Shown here one piece after another: positions 9,824-26,199 of a stretch of 64,000 bases of DNA; the first letter of the stretch is position 1, and each line of letters begins with the position of its first letter. Location of the stretch: the sequence record PV662128.1; one strand, given 5' to 3'. Below the pieces are notes generated by a model, which saw nothing but the letters and a program-made list of their open reading frames with translations, searched no databases and was not told the origin of the DNA. The position numbers and the translations under genes are program-made.

Positions 9824-10684
9824 CTAGATCCGACTCGGGACAGCATTTCTGACGGCGTTGTATTTACGATCCGGATCAGAGTAAGTCATGAGTTTTATCC
9901 AACGAGTTTTAAACAACTCCTCGTATTGGTTAAGACTGTCACGGTACTCGCTGATATCGTCACGAATAATATCAACTTGAACCCCAGAGCGGGCTACGCC
10001 TTCGTCGACTTTGTACCGAACGGTTTTCCAAATGTAGTTCTTGGTCATCAGGATAACCAGGTCGCCGAATACATCGTAAGCTCTTGGATGAATCGTGGAT
10101 AAACCGTCGTCGTAACTCAGGATAAGTTTACCCGTCAGGGAAAACACCCCACTAGGAGCACCATGAATCACAAACGAGTTATTCCCGACGAGGGTTATAT
10201 TCGTGAACGTCTGGGGAATTTCTCGATTGGGTAACATTCCGTTGATCATGGAGTTCAATGCGTCGTTGACAGTACCTACCCCGCAGGAGTCGGCATTACC
10301 AAGCACGCTCATGATCCCACTGGAAGAATTCATCGCTCCCTGGTAAACCTCCACGACCGAAATAATTTTCCTACCGCCTGTCAGGAAATCAGGGACGTTA
10401 ACCAATTCCATTCCCTGACCGAGATGTTCAATCCGTGATCCGGTTAAATCGATCAGTTCGGTCACCCCACCCTGGACGTTACACCGGGGTAGGATAATCG
10501 CATGTATAATTTTTTCTCGAATCCCTTGCTGAACGGTGGTCTGCGCGTACTGGTTATACCAGTTCCCGGTCAGATTCCCGTTAGGGTTCGAGAACGCAAG
10601 CTCCAACAGGTACTCAGGGATGTCACTCCCGTTGAGAACTTTGTTGATCGCGTAGTCCACGCAGTTCATAATCAACTCCCACAC
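9824..10684 (-). CDS. Conserved phiKZ-like virion structural protein (likely start MNCVDY)
   Basis: Long ORF co-oriented with 8325..9815; N-terminus resembles a chimallivirus structural family. Confidence 0.55.
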   Translation of the reverse strand: MWELIMNCVDYAINKVLNGSDIPEYLLELAFSNPNGNLTGNWYNQYAQTTVQQGIREKIIHAIILPRCNVQGGVTELIDLTGSRIEHLGQGMELVNVPDFLTGGRKIISVVEVYQGAMNSSSGIMSVLGNADSCGVGTVNDALNSMINGMLPNREIPQTFTNITLVGNNSFVIHGAPSGVFSLTGKLILSYDDGLSTIHPRAYDVFGDLVILMTKNYIWKTVRYKVDEGVARSGVQVDIIRDDISEYRDSLNQYEELFKTRWIKLMTYSDPDRKYNAVRNAVPSRI

Positions 10685-11184
10685 TGAGTTTCAAGACCGG
10701 AGAGATTTCCGTCTCGATAAAAATTCAACTGAGAATTTTTACTCTGGGGTTTTCGCCGGATATAATATTCCACTGCGAGAATTTAAAAACTCATCGAGTT
10801 TTATTTCCCGTATAAAATACTCCGTGCCGTAAGATAACACCCCACAGAAAAAACCTCGCCTTCGGAAAAATTCCTCGAAGGCGAGCTGCCATGATCTCAC
10901 TCGAGCAAGAATCAATCCGACATACAATCCCAATCGTTCCAAATATTTTCCATCGGGATTTTGGTTATCTGTAAATTTTTACACATGAATCTATTTTATA
11001 TTTGTATTTTTCTCGCGTGCGGATATTCTAATTTTTCAAAGATAATCTAAAACCGATTCTCGTTCTGGGTTTTTTATTTTTCTGTGTTTTGATTTTTCAA
11101 ATCCAATTTTCAAAATTCAAAAATCTAAATCTAAAAAATCTAAAATTTTAATACTCAAAAAAATCAAATTTTCCTAGGGGTCCT

Positions 11185-11413
11185 TATTACGCGTGCGTAC
11201 GCACGCACGCATATAAAAAACAAATATAATACGTAGTATTATATTTTCATTTGTTTTTATATTTTTAATTTATTAAAAATATATTAATATAAATTATTAT
11301 AAATATATTTTTTATTAGTTTGTTTTTTATAAACAAATATATAAATATATATTTATATATATTTATATTCATTAGGCGCGCGCCAGCGTGCGTATGTGCG
11401 CGCACGCGTAATA
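11185..11413. repeat. GC-rich inverted repeats flanking a ~94% AT core (origin-like element)
   Basis: tattacgcgtgcg (11185-11197) and cgcacgcgtaata (11401-11413) are exact reverse complements, extending imperfectly to ~27 bp. 11211-11374 has 10 G/C in 164 nt. Confidence 0.75.
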
Positions 11414-11816
11414 GAGAAGGGGTTATAAAAATACGAGATTTAACCTGAGAAATTATCCAGAAAAATCACACAGAGTAAAAATTTATTAACCGGAACGATT
11501 TTGAGAAGATTTAATACCCCACCTAGGAATTCGTATCGGTCGGATGAAAAAACGTCTTAGAAATCAACACAGGAAGTTTTAGAGGGTATTTCGATCGAGT
11601 TCTCAGGAAAGGATTATTCGGTGAATAAAAATATTTTAATCGGGGTAATTAATTTTTACCGCAAATTAGATTTATCGAGACGAGAAGATTTAATCACAAA
11701 GTAATTTCTTACGGAGAGCATAATCTTCTGAACAGGACTGAGATCTCGAATAGCCAGATGGAAATTATCCATCCGTTCGAAAGTTAACCTGAATTACCCC
11801 TAAGAGGCCAAATCCT

Positions 11817-12551
11817 ATGCAACCAGCTAGCCCATGGAAAAACAACAAACACGTTAAACCACAAGATAACACCACCGCAGACCGGTACGAATCTCTTCTG
11901 CGTGAATTACCTGATGCGCTCAATGCTACTCCCAGAGAGCCAGGTTACTTGATCGCAACCAAAAAGATTTTATTAGTACTGGAAATTCTCGAAGGAACTC
12001 GATTGTCAGTTCGTGACGTGATGGAAAACGAGAACCTGATTCGTAAAGTTCACGAGTTACTGGTGGAGTTGGGTTGGAAGCAAGCGATTAGCCGAGGGAC
12101 TCAGGTTTTTGTTACTCACCAGGATTTAATTAAACCGAGTATTTACCGATTGATCGATCTCGATGAAGCTGCGATAGGTTACGCCAAAGAGATCACGGAT
12201 AATATTTTATTAGACCGTCGGTTCAGTGTTCGCGTAGACGGTAACGATATCCGGATTCTTCCTGGAGACCGCAGCGCGAGTAATCCGTTTAGTCTGCTGT
12301 CCGCTAACGTAGTAAGCGGTTGGCGTAAGGCAATACGAGAGTACGATAAAACCGTCACGGGTAATCTTATTGGACATCTGACGGTTATCGGCGAAGATAC
12401 GATGAGTTGCCCGCTCGATCTAAAACTCATCTTCGGCCTACTGGATTACCTCGGTTGGCCGGAAATGTATTTAACCGGTGAACAGATCTTATTGAGTAAC
12501 CCCATGGGTGATTATCAAACCCTCGAGGTGAATTATATCGATCCTGAGTAA
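11817..12551 (+). CDS. Hypothetical protein (244 aa)
   Basis: GAGG RBS; only long ORF between two non-coding blocks. Confidence 0.7.
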   Translation: MQPASPWKNNKHVKPQDNTTADRYESLLRELPDALNATPREPGYLIATKKILLVLEILEGTRLSVRDVMENENLIRKVHELLVELGWKQAISRGTQVFVTHQDLIKPSIYRLIDLDEAAIGYAKEITDNILLDRRFSVRVDGNDIRILPGDRSASNPFSLLSANVVSGWRKAIREYDKTVTGNLIGHLTVIGEDTMSCPLDLKLIFGLLDYLGWPEMYLTGEQILLSNPMGDYQTLEVNYIDPE

Positions 12552-12803
12552 TTCGCAACCACAGTCCGATGTTATTAGTAAAGATCTTTGGGCTCCCTGT
12601 TGATTAACTAGCGACCCAACCTCATCTCTTTGAACCTCCTTACCACGAGCGAGATAGCCAAAGTAGCTAGGGATTTTCAGGGGGTTCAATCCCCATTTTC
12701 GTTAATCTTATTAGACCCACTGTCCTAAGCCCATGAAGCCTTGAAATCTCTCCTGTAGCAGACAAAGTTTTCGTTCGGTGGGATAGATTAACGTTTTTCT
12801 TCA

Positions 12804-12876
12804 CGTCGTGTTATCTGATGAGTCTTCGACGCTAAACAAGACGAAACCTAATGAATCTATTTTATTAGGTCATAAT
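12804..12876 (+). ncRNA. Hammerhead ribozyme (type I), predicted cleavage after C12871 (GUC)
   Basis: Core CUGAUGA 12815-12821; stem II GUCUU/AAGAC; GAAA 12843-12846; stem III ACCUAAU/AUUAGGU; stem I GUUAU/AUAAU; loop II CGACG can pseudoknot with CGUCG 12804-12808. Confidence 0.87.
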
Positions 12877-13510
12877 TCAACCTAAGCGTTGAACGGGCAG
12901 TTAGGGGCAATGGTCCCCGAGGTCTTCAGCTTCTTCGCCTGCCCGCACTAAAAAGTTCTTTCATGATTAGGCGCGCCGCACTCTACGAGCGGACAATAAG
13001 CAACCGAAAGTGGGAGAGAAAGAAGCGTGTCCGGTCGCTTGCCGGAAAGTTGGTTTAGGCGGGTTTCTTCCCAACCCAAACGACGCTGCCCAAGATAGGG
13101 CTGCAAGTCGTATTAGCGAATTATACCGGCATGCGGGGTTTCCGCGATAAGCCGGGTTAGCTACGGGTAAGAAACCGGCCGGAGTAATCAGCCTTTCGTA
13201 TTCGGGTAACGTGAGTTATCGTAGAGATATCTCTGAGGGTTAGGCCAACCCCCGACGTTCTCCGAGTCCGAAGGGAAGCTTGCTCAGCTTCACAGAAACT
13301 CCAAAATCTCAGACGGTCACACCTCGTAATCTTACGGCAGTATGATTGCCTATTCGTCCTTTGTCGCTCACCAAGGGGCGAGTAGGAAACCTCTGCCACG
13401 GCGTTTCGATTGCTTGCTTTTGTCATAACCCTTCTGTATAGGTTGAGTGTTAACTTCCCCAAGAGTATAACCTGTTATCTCTCTCTTCGTGAGAAGTCGG
13501 AGATAATGGG
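12872..13510 (+). ncRNA. Candidate large structured ncRNA downstream of the hammerhead; 3' boundary uncertain
   Basis: No credible ORF, visibly GC-richer than its flanks, many nested helices (12894-12900/12939-12945, 13030-13034/13042-13046, 13080-13084/13107-13111, 13126-13130/13151-13155). Confidence 0.5.
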
Positions 13511-13531
13511 ATAAATTCTTAGGAGTTCGTT

Positions 13532-13720
13532 ATGTACACATACCAGTATACCGTGCGATACCGAATACCTAATTCTGTGTTTACGACCTACAGCGGAGAA
13601 ATTACTTCTGACTGTTTGCTCAATAACGCTAATCGCATTTTTGATGTCTTGCGTACTGAAGTTCATAAGGCTGTTAACGTTGACTCGTTTAGCATTACGA
13701 GCTTCAAGCTGAAAGAATAA
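13532..13720 (+). CDS. Small hypothetical protein (62 aa)
   Basis: Strong AGGAG RBS. Confidence 0.6.
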   Translation: MYTYQYTVRYRIPNSVFTTYSGEITSDCLLNNANRIFDVLRTEVHKAVNVDSFSITSFKLKE

Positions 13721-13890
13721 GTCGAGCTACGCGCTCCGTCTACCTTAGGACCGGAAGTAGTTACGACTTAGGGGGAAAGAAGAGTCGTGCCTTTGAGTAC
13801 CCCAACCTCATTCGTGTGGTGATCTTTCACATCATCTCATGGATATTGCTACATCATCATCATTAAAGTTCTACCATGAATTTTATTCCT

Positions 13891-13922
13891 TCCAGTAGGG
13901 TTCGTCCCTACTGGACTTTTTT
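13891..13922 (+). terminator. Intrinsic terminator
   Basis: tccagtaggg/ccctactgga stem plus T tract. Confidence 0.8.
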
Positions 13923-13978
13923 CGCGTTTTATTTATCGGCGCATATAAGGTTATAGAGGAACTAGATTTTTTGAGTTC

Positions 13979-13995
13979 TAAATTATCGTAATGTA
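13979..13995 (+). promoter_or_regulatory. Promoter-like motif upstream of phuZ
   Basis: AGAT-N11-TAAATTAT-N6-GTA. Confidence 0.55.
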
Positions 13996-14053
13996 AAGCA
14001 AAAGATAATGCTTTCCATTCCAACTATCATAATTTCTTTTAGGAGTTTCATCT

Positions 14054-15016
14054 ATGAGCACATTACGTGTTTACGCGTGTGGCGGTACCGGTATTAATAT
14101 TGCGTCTAAATGGATTGCTAACAGTGCGAATAGTCTTATTCGTAAAGCCCAGTTCATCGGACTGGACAGCAGTGAAAACAACAAACCGCATAACGACGCC
14201 TTTAAGGTGGAACGTCCGGAAGGAACTCGCGGCGGCGGTAAGGAACGTAAGCTGATCGGTAAAATCGCTGCTGGGTTTATTGACAGTATTTTGACCAAAC
14301 ATAAACCGGGTGATTTCAACCTGATCATCATGAACGCGGCGGGAGCTACCGGGAGTACGTTCGGCCCGACTCTGATCAATCGTCTCCTCACCCAGGGGGT
14401 TCCGGTCATTGCGTTGGTCGTAGGCGACCTGACTTCTGAACTGGAAAACTACAACACGGTTAAAACGTTTGAAAGCCTGGACAACCAGCGCATCAATCTG
14501 GACGTCCCGGTCATTATTGATTACGTGGATAACGCCAAATATCCCAGCCGCGGATTGGCCGACAAATACGCCATCGGACGCCTCGATATCCTGAGCCTGT
14601 TCTTAACCGACGAACACGAAGAAAGTGACTTCCAAGATATTCGCAACCTGTTCTACTACAACCAGGTCACCAAGGCGGCGCCTACTCTTGCCCGTATCGA
14701 CTTCTTGACCGACACTCAGTTAGACAGCGCTACCCCCGGCCTGGTCGCTGAATTCGGTCTGTATCGTAAAGCGGATGATATCGGCAGTCATATCAAAAAT
14801 CTGGCGTATCGTTCTACTGGTGTTATTCAGGAAGGTAGCACTAACTTCCCGTCCGGCGTAGAACATCTCCACATGGTCTTTGACCACGATGCGACGATCA
14901 AAGATATCCTGGTTCTGGTTCAGGATCTTAAAGATGTTGAGATCCAAAATAACGAACGTTTTAAATCTGCTCAGCAGGTTGGAAACGGCGGCGATGATTC
15001 TGGAATGTCCTACTAA
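14054..15016 (+). CDS. phuZ: PhuZ phage tubulin
   Basis: Tubulin/FtsZ motifs ACGGTGINI, GTRGGGK, NAAGATGS, NTVKT; acidic tail ending DDSGMSY; strong codon bias. Confidence 0.93.
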   Translation: MSTLRVYACGGTGINIASKWIANSANSLIRKAQFIGLDSSENNKPHNDAFKVERPEGTRGGGKERKLIGKIAAGFIDSILTKHKPGDFNLIIMNAAGATGSTFGPTLINRLLTQGVPVIALVVGDLTSELENYNTVKTFESLDNQRINLDVPVIIDYVDNAKYPSRGLADKYAIGRLDILSLFLTDEHEESDFQDIRNLFYYNQVTKAAPTLARIDFLTDTQLDSATPGLVAEFGLYRKADDIGSHIKNLAYRSTGVIQEGSTNFPSGVEHLHMVFDHDATIKDILVLVQDLKDVEIQNNERFKSAQQVGNGGDDSGMSY

Positions 15017-24415: not shown

Positions 24416-25834
24416 GTGAACGGAGACGTTATGGATCAGTACGGCGATCGTATTATTGATGCATTAACAGCGCCTGAATTTTCATCGTTGCAACCAGAGG
24501 CTCAGTTTAAAACTTACGCCAAACAATACGGCGGCGATCTTTCTGACGATAAACGTTTTTATGAGCCGCTATATCCCGACTTCACTGACTATAACCGTTT
24601 GCATGATACCGCTAAGGTTGATCCGGTTTACCTGAACGATTTCGATTTTTGTTTGGAAGAAGACCGAGAACGAATCGCATCCTTAATTCGTATGGACTTC
24701 AACACCGACACATTCGAAACCGTGGCGAGATGTAGTTGTGGTCACTTGAAGGGCAACTATTTGTTGGGTCAGAAGAGATCGTGCCCCATATGTCAATCCC
24801 TTGTAGAGAAAGTCGTGGAGACTTCCTTAGATACTAAGGTGTGGGTCAGGGTTCCAGAAGGCGTGGTTGCATTTATCAGCCCGGCTTATTACAAAACCTT
24901 CTTATCGAAGATCGCGACCAATTCTCCAAAGATTGAGATCGTGACTTGGCTCATTGATCCGTCTTATCGTCGGGGTAGTCGAGCACAACATACTGAGTCG
25001 GGTCGTCGCATGTTGGCTGAACTCGATAAACTCGGAATAGTCCCTGGGCTTAATAGCTTTATACTGAACGCGGACAAATTCATGGAACACTTCCTTGTTG
25101 GTGAAGGAAGAGGCGCTGTGAGCATGAAACCAGCTGACGGTAAAAAGCATTTGGATAAGTATTACGAATATCGTCATCTTATCTTCCCGCGCTATTTGTC
25201 GGTACCCAATAAACTCGCTACCATCATCGAGCAAGATGGTAAAGATAAGTACGTTTCTTCAACCCAATTGAAAACCTCGGCAATCTACCAATCTATTGCG
25301 GATACGAGAGATTCTACTGAGTTTTATAAATGTACGATTAAGGATCTTAAAGAGAACGCTGATATCGTCGGGAAGGCGATAGTTCGATTAGGTAAACAGA
25401 ACTCTGATAACTATAAGAGTCAGCTGTTTGCTAAATCGAGCCTGATACGTAAACACGTCATCGCGGGATCGTTATCTTTATCAGGTCGTGGTGTTATCAC
25501 GTCAACGACCGGATTGCATGATGCTGGTGTTGCTAAGATACCTTGGATCATGGCAGTAGCTATGCTGAAGAAACACATCCTGGGATATCTTTACCGTTTA
25601 GGGTACAGTCCCCTGAGAGCTGAAAGTGTAATCAGTACAGCTGCGCACCAGGTCGTCCCGGTTATCGATCAATTCTTTACCAAGCACGAAAAGCAAAAAG
25701 ACATTGTCTGCATTTTAGGAAGAAACCCATCAATTCAGTACCTGTCAGCAAAAGCCTTCTTTATGTCGATCAACCGAGATTTAGAAGACGAATCGATAAA
25801 CTTACCGATACTCTCAGTTAAAACCTTCAATGCT
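24416..25834 (+). CDS. nvRNAP beta-prime N-terminal subunit (phiKZ gp55-like), exon 1
   Basis: Zn finger CSCG..CPIC, RKHVIAG, GRNPS; the frame reaches FNA of the NADFDGD motif and then runs into intron sequence. Confidence 0.88.
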
Positions 25835-26199
25835 AAACATATTGGCCCAGTAGACGCGAAAGCTCTGCTGCGTACTCTCTCTAATTGCTGGAAACTCCTA
25901 AAGCTCGTTCACCTCGTATAGAGGGGTCGAAAGACAGAAACAACGAACGAGATATCTCACGCTAACCAATAATGCTAAAAGATAAATAATGGGTTACCTA
26001 GCAGCGAACCCTACCTCGGTAGGAGACGTTCAACGACTAGAGCTGAAATGCTCGTAGGATCCTAGTGTGGATCCGAAATGGGAGAGGACCTAAGTTTGAC
26101 AGTAGTCAAATATGGTTAAGATATAGTCTGTGCCCTCAGGAAATCTGAGGGAGGGTGTCTCAGCACACCTGCTCCATATGGAACGGAGTGGACAATCAG
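25835..26199 (+). ncRNA. Group I intron 1 (IA2-like), no ORF
   Basis: 5' exon ends in U; P AAUUGCUGGAAA 25883-25894; Q UAGCAG; R GUUCAACGACUAG 26028-26040; P7.1 and P7.2 hairpins; S AAGAUAUAGUCU 26118-26129; P9 hairpins; terminal G 26199. Confidence 0.92.

Follow-up and report, generated by a model that had tools for sequence, protein, structure and literature searches.

A conserved structured RNA behind a hammerhead ribozyme, probably joined to a small gene upstream of phuZ in Miamivirus-like jumbo phages

Hammerhead ribozymes of type I are known from phages (Rfam clan CL00010; RAGATH-1-hammerhead, RF03152), as are large structured RNAs: GOLLD and ROOL are linked to phages and prophages, are hundreds of nucleotides (nt) long, consist of many helices and have no known function. 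Highly structured RNA is combined with one short open reading frame (ORF) in RNAIII of Staphylococcus aureus with hld, in SgrS with SgrT, and in the leaders of ribosomal-protein operons. Here, we describe a locus in which a hammerhead, a strongly folded, conserved RNA and a short ORF follow one another on the same strand. It lies in the first 64 kb of Raoultella phage VB_ZK_P1 (PV662128.1), a Miamivirus-like jumbo phage; this entire 64-kb stretch is referred to as the window, and coordinates are positions in it unless another sequence is named. Positions 12872-13510 had been proposed in an initial annotation to be a novel RNA of ~600 nt, released by the hammerhead and possibly circularized. 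Our preferred interpretation, to which we assign a probability of about one half, is that they make up the first two-thirds, highly structured, of a transcript of ~1.05 kb that is processed by the hammerhead and the folded body of which governs expression of a 62-amino acid (aa) protein in cis. A free or circular 600-nt RNA is probably not what the locus produces.

The ribozyme shares with other phage type I hammerheads the full core, the three stems with an open stem I and the GUC triplet and, as in several cases from IMG/VR, it has a gene on the same strand 3´ of it. It differs in scoring below threshold in Rfam, in having an 11-nt loop II that apparently pairs with the 5´ flank, and in being followed by 660 nt of conserved structure, whereas in several of the IMG/VR hammerheads inspected the ribosome-binding site (RBS), a Shine-Dalgarno (SD) sequence with its start codon, is found within tens of bases 3´. 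The RNA, here called Miami-type RNA, is like GOLLD and ROOL in the properties listed above. Unlike them, it is joined to a small ORF, has a ribozyme at its 5´ side and is restricted to few jumbo-phage lineages, and it matches neither their models nor, apart from weak hammerhead matches, any other described family in Rfam 15 at E<=10. The dual-function and long-leader RNAs have no sequence or structural homology to it and offer an analogy of layout only, although the fold of the 62-aa protein weakly resembles an rRNA-binding protein, which is reminiscent of autoregulated ribosomal-protein leaders. A full-text literature search on hammerheads and non-coding RNAs in nucleus-forming jumbo phages yielded nothing more specific than a mention that non-coding RNAs are expressed by phiKZ. 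The hammerhead adds a new member to an established class, and the RNA body, as the initial annotation had supposed, belongs to no described family. The kind of RNA, a ribozyme-processed structured phage RNA, is already known; here the family is narrow (three lineages) and its global fold is a model. The combination of ribozyme, 540-660-nt conserved fold, small ORF and conserved trailer appears to be undescribed.

The comparison rests on few relatives. The region is 93-97% identical in the Klebsiella phages KPN8, Miami, YC1 and phiKp_32 and in 'Stenotrophomonas' phage BUCTxx100, which are Miamivirus-type jumbo phages of ~250 kb; Miami, KPN8 and their relatives can be propagated on Klebsiella laboratory strains. 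Beyond this Miami-like group, only two relatives were found, both in Logan assemblies identified through PhuZ in a search of 5.8 billion proteins. L010 has a PhuZ that is 74% identical, and its contig covers the RNA only from the position corresponding to 13256 onwards; L011 has a PhuZ that is 49% identical and covers the whole locus. This makes three lineages within the collections searched. Searches of IMG/VR through PhuZ and through the 244-aa protein encoded upstream added no homologue of the RNA, a pattern based on a hairpin of the body (Px, below) retrieved from JGI metagenomes only a Miami-like contig and chance matches in GC-rich bacterial DNA, and neither IMG/VR nor the GTDB genomes contained a match to a pattern specific for this hammerhead. 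A protein-database search with a profile of the 62-aa protein returned the same three clusters and nothing further. When L011 was compared with the phage collection by blastn, the hammerhead was the sole match.

The hammerhead occupies 12803-12876 on the + strand. Stem II (12822-26/12838-42) and stem III (12847-52/12864-69) are closed hairpins and stem I (12810-14/12872-76) is open, which makes it type I. The core elements CUGAUGA (12815-21) and GAAA (12843-46) are in place, and cleavage is predicted after C12871, the last position of a GUC triplet that includes U12870. The catalytic core (CUGAUGA, GAAA, A12846-U12870 and C12871) is invariant in the window, KPN8, Miami and L011, in the last of these despite the distance between the PhuZ proteins, and 21/21 modelled pairs form in all four sequences. 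In L011, one pair of stem I has changed from U-A to C-G, a double change, and one of stem III from A-U to G-U; a second position of stem I is G-U in the window, A-U in KPN8 and G-C in L011. The hammerhead in front of the RNA was correctly recognized and is conserved with covariation in stem I, although a shuffle control on the four-sequence alignment (108/500) is not significant at n=4. The 5´ flank CGUC(G) at 12804-08 is paired with loop II at 12827-31 in our model, and in both lineages (A)CGUC of the flank can pair with GACG in a conserved loop II of 11-13 nt, plausibly as a tertiary contact. The ribozyme falls below all hammerhead gathering thresholds in Rfam (Hammerhead_3, 23.7 bits and E 0.079 against 48.5; RAGATH-1-hammerhead, 19 bits against 56.3). 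Nowhere else in the window does a hammerhead-like core come with a paired stem II, and 10600-14200 contains no match to any further family of self-cleaving ribozymes.

Hammerheads with the same stem II are common in phages. We fetched 127 from IMG/VR by this stem, and those inspected have the type I layout; stem II GUCUU/AAGAC is common to at least 119 IMG/VR phage stretches. These widespread ribozymes (L022-L101 and further IMG/VR loci), an unrelated family from gut phages that was retrieved with a looser hammerhead pattern, have the loop UGAAAAUU, and some contigs carry two or three copies. Judged by analogy, phage hammerheads of this kind look like 5´ processing devices for mRNAs.

The sequence behind the ribozyme is conserved without coding. 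The longest + strand ORF inside 12872-13510 is 46 aa, and GC content is 0.52-0.55 at 12900-13350 compared to ~0.42-0.47 in the flanks, such that the earlier description of a gene-free and GC-richer stretch is borne out. Alignments of the locus were made from six, then from 15 distinct Miami-like sequences; the divergences that follow are those between the window and Miami. The hammerhead does not differ at all (0%), and divergence is 1.3% in an upstream block A (12568-12719), 2.0% in the body of the RNA (12872-13408) and 2.2% in the last hairpin and RBS. PhuZ codon positions 1+2 differ by 2.2% and the 62-codon ORF by 6.9%. The linker 12720-12778 differs by 30%, and the fast-evolving linker 13409-13441, which has a 9-nt indel, by 24% (range 24-30%). 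Third codon positions of the flanking genes differ by 13-37%, i.e. divergence of the body is 6-18 times lower. Within tens of bases, conserved segments give way to neutral-looking ones and back again, a pattern that a recent sweep or recombination cannot have caused. The region is non-coding sequence under strong purifying selection, with no conserved reading frame.

The conserved sequence is also strongly folded. The minimum free energy (MFE) of 12873-13531 is -247.9 kcal/mol, corresponding to z -5.55 on the + strand against dinucleotide shuffles and z -3.49 on the - strand, while a piece of the same length from the adjacent coding sequence (CDS) of the 244-aa protein gave z -0.02. The + strand reaches z -5.03 in L011 and -4.66 in L010 (minus strand of L010, -2.74). 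Together with collinear hairpins that L010 and L011 retain in spite of different sequences, this upholds the proposal of a structured RNA. Most of the helices listed in the initial annotation are present in the MFE structure, including 12895-12900/12939-12944, 12974-78/12986-91, 13030-35/13041-46 and those within 13080-13111, 13126-13155 and 13471-82/13499-510. Two need correction: CGUAA/UUACG leaves a 2-nt loop, and its best register is disrupted by U13327C in 14/15 relatives, and UCGCUC/GGGCGA is better drawn as a 15-bp hairpin (13349-63/13372-86). ARAGORN detected no tRNA or tmRNA in the window, and a cmscan of 10600-14200 against Rfam 15 at E<=10 gave only two weak hammerhead matches and three at chance level, in agreement with the statement that no tRNA, tmRNA, RNase P or group I/II core is present. 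The stretch has no similarity to E. coli genomes or plasmids that would point to a host origin. Direct repeats between the RNA and its 3´ untranslated region (UTR) were attributed to chance or low complexity, and so was the recurrence of 15 nt of the stem III loop at 10985. Complementarities of the RNA to the rest of the window are 12-13 nt only, which is chance level and provides no evidence of trans targets.

The body begins at A12872, the predicted 5´-hydroxyl end, and the start proposed earlier is thus the right one. Directly after stem I follows hairpin P1 (12877-12892; UCAAC/GUUGA, 5/5 pairs, loop CUAAGC), in the place of which L011 has ACGAC/GUCGU. Hairpin Px (13030-13046) has the conserved loop GGUCGCU and a 3´ tail AAGUUG. 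Its strands are UCCGGU/GCCGGA in the window and CCUGGU/ACCGGG in L011, with changes from U-A to C-G, C-G to U-G and U-G to U-A, and C13032U gives a U-G pair in the Miami group. A three-way junction domain (13058-13180), closed by GGC.GGUUUCUUCCC/GGG.AAGAAACC.GCC and seen both in the MFE structure and as inverted repeat I1, encloses the hairpin 13080-13111 and hairpin Py (13126-13155). In Py, 13 relatives have U-A instead of C13130-G13151, and one has the intermediate U-G; the strands are CCGGC/GCCGG in the window, CCGGU/ACCGG in the Miami group and CCGGCGG/CCGCUGG in L011, where Py follows the same UAUACCGGC anchor. P15 is the 15-bp hairpin mentioned above (13349-13386; 15/15 pairs, 3 G-U, z -6.0), and L010 has at 78-111 a collinear 15/15 hairpin of unrelated strands (4 G-U, z -5.6). 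The last hairpin, Pt (13471-13510; z -3.8 and -3.7), has 12/12 pairs in the window, 13/13 in L010 and 17/17 in L011; double changes are seen between these versions, and each of them includes 2-5 G-U pairs. It ends in the conserved UAAUGGGA, always as UAAUGG(G)A. Since the conserved helices hold 2-5 G-U pairs, the + strand is the one that folds. In the window, the P1 loop (CCUAAG) can pair over a long range with the loop motif CUUAGG of the 3´ stem-loop; as this pairing is not kept in L011, it was dropped.

Compensatory changes are found in stem I, Px, Py, Pt and the 3´ stem-loop described below. With three lineages only, we claim no statistically significant covariation: the changes are suggestive and not decisive for the global fold, and the long-range helices of the MFE structure are a model only. 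L011 is considerably shorter, with ~350 nt between cleavage site and ORF compared to 660 nt in the window, and has collinear anchors (the hammerhead, GGUCGCU..CCGG.AAGUUG, UAUACCGGC and UAAUGGGA). A covariance model (CM R1) built from the Miami-like sequences of 13020-13166 alone has its top match in the collinear place of L011 (704-832; 21 bits, E 0.001) and no paralogue in the window. The window and L011 thus have a core in common, and a large part of the 600 nt of the window, chiefly in ~13156-13335, is lineage-specific expansion.

Downstream of the body, the three lineages are alike in organization. Pt with its conserved tail is located 10-16 nt from the RBS in all of them; in the window, the RBS is UAGGAG at 13520-25, followed by the 62-codon ORF (13532-13720, + strand). 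The ORF is present in all three lineages with 65% and 34% identity of the protein, and third codon positions take 9/15 of its substitutions; by these sequence criteria, it is a real gene. The protein has no Pfam or PHROG family. AlphaFold2 predicts a beta-beta-alpha-beta fold with a predicted local distance difference test (pLDDT) score of 93, and the best structural matches of the model are the archaeal/eukaryotic ribosomal protein LX/eL20, with weak E-values, and small uncharacterized phage proteins. The resemblance to LX/eL20 is a weak one between a model and a known fold, and is used here as a lead only. A 3´ stem-loop (13718-13770) spans the stop codon and carries the loop motif CCUUAGG(A/G)CCG, common to the window, L010 and L011. 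Its outer stem has 7/7 pairs in the window and L011, with two double changes from A-U to U-A, its inner stem covaries too, and the fold of the 3´ UTR has z -4.3. A second covarying hairpin is seen 3´ of it at ~13769-13805. The unit ends in a strong intrinsic terminator (13891-13925) made of a 10-bp GC-rich stem (13891-13915) and a T run, with equivalents in L010 and L011. The order of RNA, ORF, 3´ stem-loop and terminator is identical in all three lineages and predicts a mature RNA of ~1,050 nt, from 12872 to ~13925, with a structured leader of 660 nt, an ORF of 189 nt and a structured trailer of 200 nt.

The proposed free RNA of ~600 nt does not agree with this organization. No terminator-like site with a usable position was found between 12872 and 13531 and no second ribozyme or other recognizable 3´ end ahead of the RBS; the first terminator is the one at 13891-13915. 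Position 13510 is the end of the last hairpin and no demonstrated 3´ end of an RNA. The two neighbouring ORFs had been put forward as partners of the RNA. For the 62-aa ORF this is sustained by its synteny with the RNA in all three lineages. The 244-aa orphan ORF (11817-12551, + strand), which ends at the 5´ side of the 980-nt stretch without annotated gene that precedes the 62-aa ORF, is confined to the Miami-like group, and the structure model of its product has a pLDDT of 44. It is absent from the L011 locus, where the upstream gene is on the opposite strand, and its proposed role as a partner is unsupported. On the 3´ side, a gene-free gap of 333 nt separates the 62-aa ORF from phuZ (14054-15016, + strand), which encodes the PhuZ tubulin of 320 aa.

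We envisage the following course of events. Transcription would enter from upstream, either through the 244-aa gene or from a promoter behind it, and the hammerhead would cut co-transcriptionally after C12871. The mature RNA would then start with a 5´-hydroxyl at A12872 directly next to hairpin P1. RNase E senses 5´-hydroxyl ends poorly, and such an end combined with a hairpin may uncouple the downstream RNA from the upstream message and stabilize it. The next ~540 nt are predicted to fold into the conserved hairpins and the three-way junction, followed by the short fast-evolving linker, the last hairpin abutting the RBS of the 62-codon ORF, the stem-loop over the stop codon and the terminator. 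The folded domain would act while joined to the small mRNA, by stabilizing it and setting the timing and amount of the 62-aa protein; possible binding sites of this protein are the body, Pt and the 3´ stem-loop. We favour a processed mRNA with an extraordinary leader because several similar phage hammerheads precede an RBS and start codon.

Several observations weigh against this interpretation. The leader is more conserved than the ORF behind it (2.0% vs 6.9%), which is odd for a mere leader. Substitutions within the Miami-like group at positions paired in the MFE structure are consistent with pairing in only 14 cases and disruptive in 9 (a further 22 are at unpaired positions). The linker 13409-13441 between the body and the last hairpin could be an RNase processing site. 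The SD sequence is paired in the MFE structure of each lineage, but with non-equivalent partners, and the predicted SD sequestration is hence no evidence for the leader. The nearest-neighbour MFE of the isolated hammerhead region prefers the pairing of flank and loop II and misses stems I and II. Cleavage, RNA ends and promoter are all inferred from the sequence. Finally, a structured RNA at the same genomic position in Aphroditevirus ends in a terminator and has no ORF.

The Aphroditevirus RNA deserves a description of its own. Aphroditevirus is the nearest other genus, with a PhuZ that is ~41% identical, and its syntenic gap upstream of phuZ contains a large structured RNA of 470-610 nt that is GC-richer and has z -5.65. 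It was analysed in the Vibrio phages Aphrodite1, 2 TSL-2019 and phiKT1019 and in Photobacterium phage PDCC-1 (L004:4503-4985, L005:4363-4985, L145:863-1485 and L146:861-1485). Among these four phages, 25 of 149 predicted pairs show compensatory double changes, and conserved blocks are interrupted by variable hairpin expansions. The gap holds no ORF, hammerhead or Rfam match, and a terminator of its own follows directly after the RNA, which seems to represent a further undescribed RNA. Like the Miami-type RNA, it is strongly folded, is absent from Rfam and, in syntenic loci, directly precedes the phuZ promoter; unlike it, it comes without hammerhead and 62-aa ORF and is terminated at once. In Erwinia phage RisingSun, the gap upstream of phuZ (L006:4345-5000, 656 nt) shows moderately more folding than chance (z -2.9) and also has a terminator at its end. 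With nhmmer, no homology to the Miami-type RNA was detected in the gaps that precede phuZ in Aphrodite1, PDCC-1 and RisingSun, CM R1 has no significant match in these gaps, and a model built from the Aphroditevirus RNA (CM R2) does not match the Miami-type RNA. The 8-9-mers CGAGUCCGA and CCUAUUCG and a similar GGGUUCUU/AAGAAUCC helix, shared between the Miami-type RNA and these gaps, are at chance level and were dropped. As no homology was found, the RNAs of the two genera are a positional parallel only. The initial annotation also suggested roles at the nucleus or spindle or as a decoy, which are speculative; the link of the RNA to phuZ is likewise one of position, strengthened by this second, not detectably related RNA at the same place.

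The parallel keeps alive the idea that the RNA, and not the small ORF, is the point of the locus. In that case, an RNase of the host or the phage would cut in or near the variable linker (13409-13470) and free a structured RNA of ~540-600 nt that acts in trans, for example as a scaffold or decoy for proteins in nucleus-based infection, with the mRNA of the 62-aa protein as a by-product or as a partner under separate regulation. We consider this the leading alternative, though distinctly less probable than a cis-acting leader. It would account for a body that is more conserved than the ORF, and for the conservation of sequence itself and not of pairing alone, as is found in RNAs with tertiary structure or protein partners. 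The neutral-looking linker sets the body apart from Pt and the RBS, and the Aphroditevirus RNA, with its covarying pairs and own terminator, would be a precedent. That RNA has no detectable homology to the Miami-type RNA, however, and in the locus itself no 3´-end signal is recognizable ahead of the ORF. Pt and its UAAUGGGA tail are located directly on the RBS in all three lineages, and the short distance from cleavage site to ORF in L011 (~350 nt) implies that much of the 600 nt is dispensable expansion.

A DNA-level element, such as a replication origin, a packaging site or a cluster of promoters with only incidental RNA folds, is very unlikely. The stretch is non-coding and conserved, as such an element would be, and the phage has its own RNA polymerases, the promoters of which are not defined here. 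Yet the two strands fold unequally, the 2-5 G-U pairs per conserved helix would be A-C on the other strand, and compensatory changes maintain pairing. A hammerhead on the same strand marks the 5´ edge, repeat analysis revealed no repeat or iteron array at 12872-13510, and there is no AT-rich unwinding element in the stretch. A far better origin-like region is found at 10685-11816. This ORF-free region of 1.1 kb is a candidate for a replication origin or for a hub of divergent promoters: ~150 nt of almost pure A+T (11221-11374) are flanked by GC-rich palindromes of alternating purines and pyrimidines (~11196-11220 and ~11375-11410), and repeats of the AAATCTAAAA type are seen at 11100-11150.

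It is even less probable that the stretch is coding after all, through translated small ORFs or through a 101-aa ORF on the - strand (13157-13462) that is annotated as hypothetical in 2/6 GenBank relatives, Miami and KPN8. This ORF stays open in the Miami-like group, where the 9-nt indel is in frame. It starts with TTG, its product is Arg-rich, of low complexity and without match in Pfam or PHROG, and its frame is broken by two stops in L010. No ORF or frame is shared with L011, and conservation is also seen at 12872-13157, which contains no ORF longer than 52 aa. The GenBank entries contain several minus-strand hypothetical CDSs across the RNA (CPT_Miami_269 and _268, KPN8_253 and _254), which are very likely spurious annotations. 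As slight are the prospects of a circular RNA closed by an RtcB-type ligase: hammerhead cleavage does yield the 5´-hydroxyl that RtcB uses, but closure needs a 3´-phosphate or 2´,3´-cyclic phosphate at the other end, and thus a second cleavage for which no ribozyme was found beside the one hammerhead-like core, and the unit ends in an intrinsic terminator, leaving a 3´-hydroxyl.

Cleavage would also produce a 5´ fragment, part of which is block A. It is conserved like the body and shows no excess folding (z -0.06). Block A contains a 13-mer, ACCUCCUUACCAC (12634-12646, + strand), which L011 has without any change at 470-482. It matches the 3´ end (anti-SD) of 16S rRNA in nine bases and could be an SD-pairing element. 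No conserved ORF is present around it on either strand when the window and L011 are compared. In L011, a second CCUCCUUA is found at 518-525, just 5´ of the hammerhead. A GC hairpin with a U-rich tail in block A (12680-12704, + strand) was flagged as terminator-like. The GGGGGUUCAAUCCCC hairpin was also considered as tRNA-like; ARAGORN found nothing, and it looks more like a weak terminator. Elsewhere in the window, a group I intron was detected at 25825-26151 (Rfam RF00028, 63.8 bits, above the gathering threshold).

Large structured RNAs under such tight conservation tend to have sophisticated functions, and very few examples are known from phages. The locus provides a clean case in which the purpose of a phage hammerhead may be to set the 5´ end of a defined RNA, and a candidate RNA-protein pair on one transcript. 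Taken together with the Aphroditevirus RNA, it hints that jumbo phages of this branch have in common a structured RNA beside phuZ. One intriguing but doubtful extension is that nucleus-forming jumbo phages of the Miamivirus and Aphroditevirus lineages keep a large folded RNA upstream of phuZ, in two versions that have diverged beyond alignment, and that the Miami-type version, matured by a hammerhead and encoding its own protein partner, forms a trans-acting ribonucleoprotein needed for infection. If so, it might serve, for example, in the handling of RNA at the phage nucleus or in host takeover.

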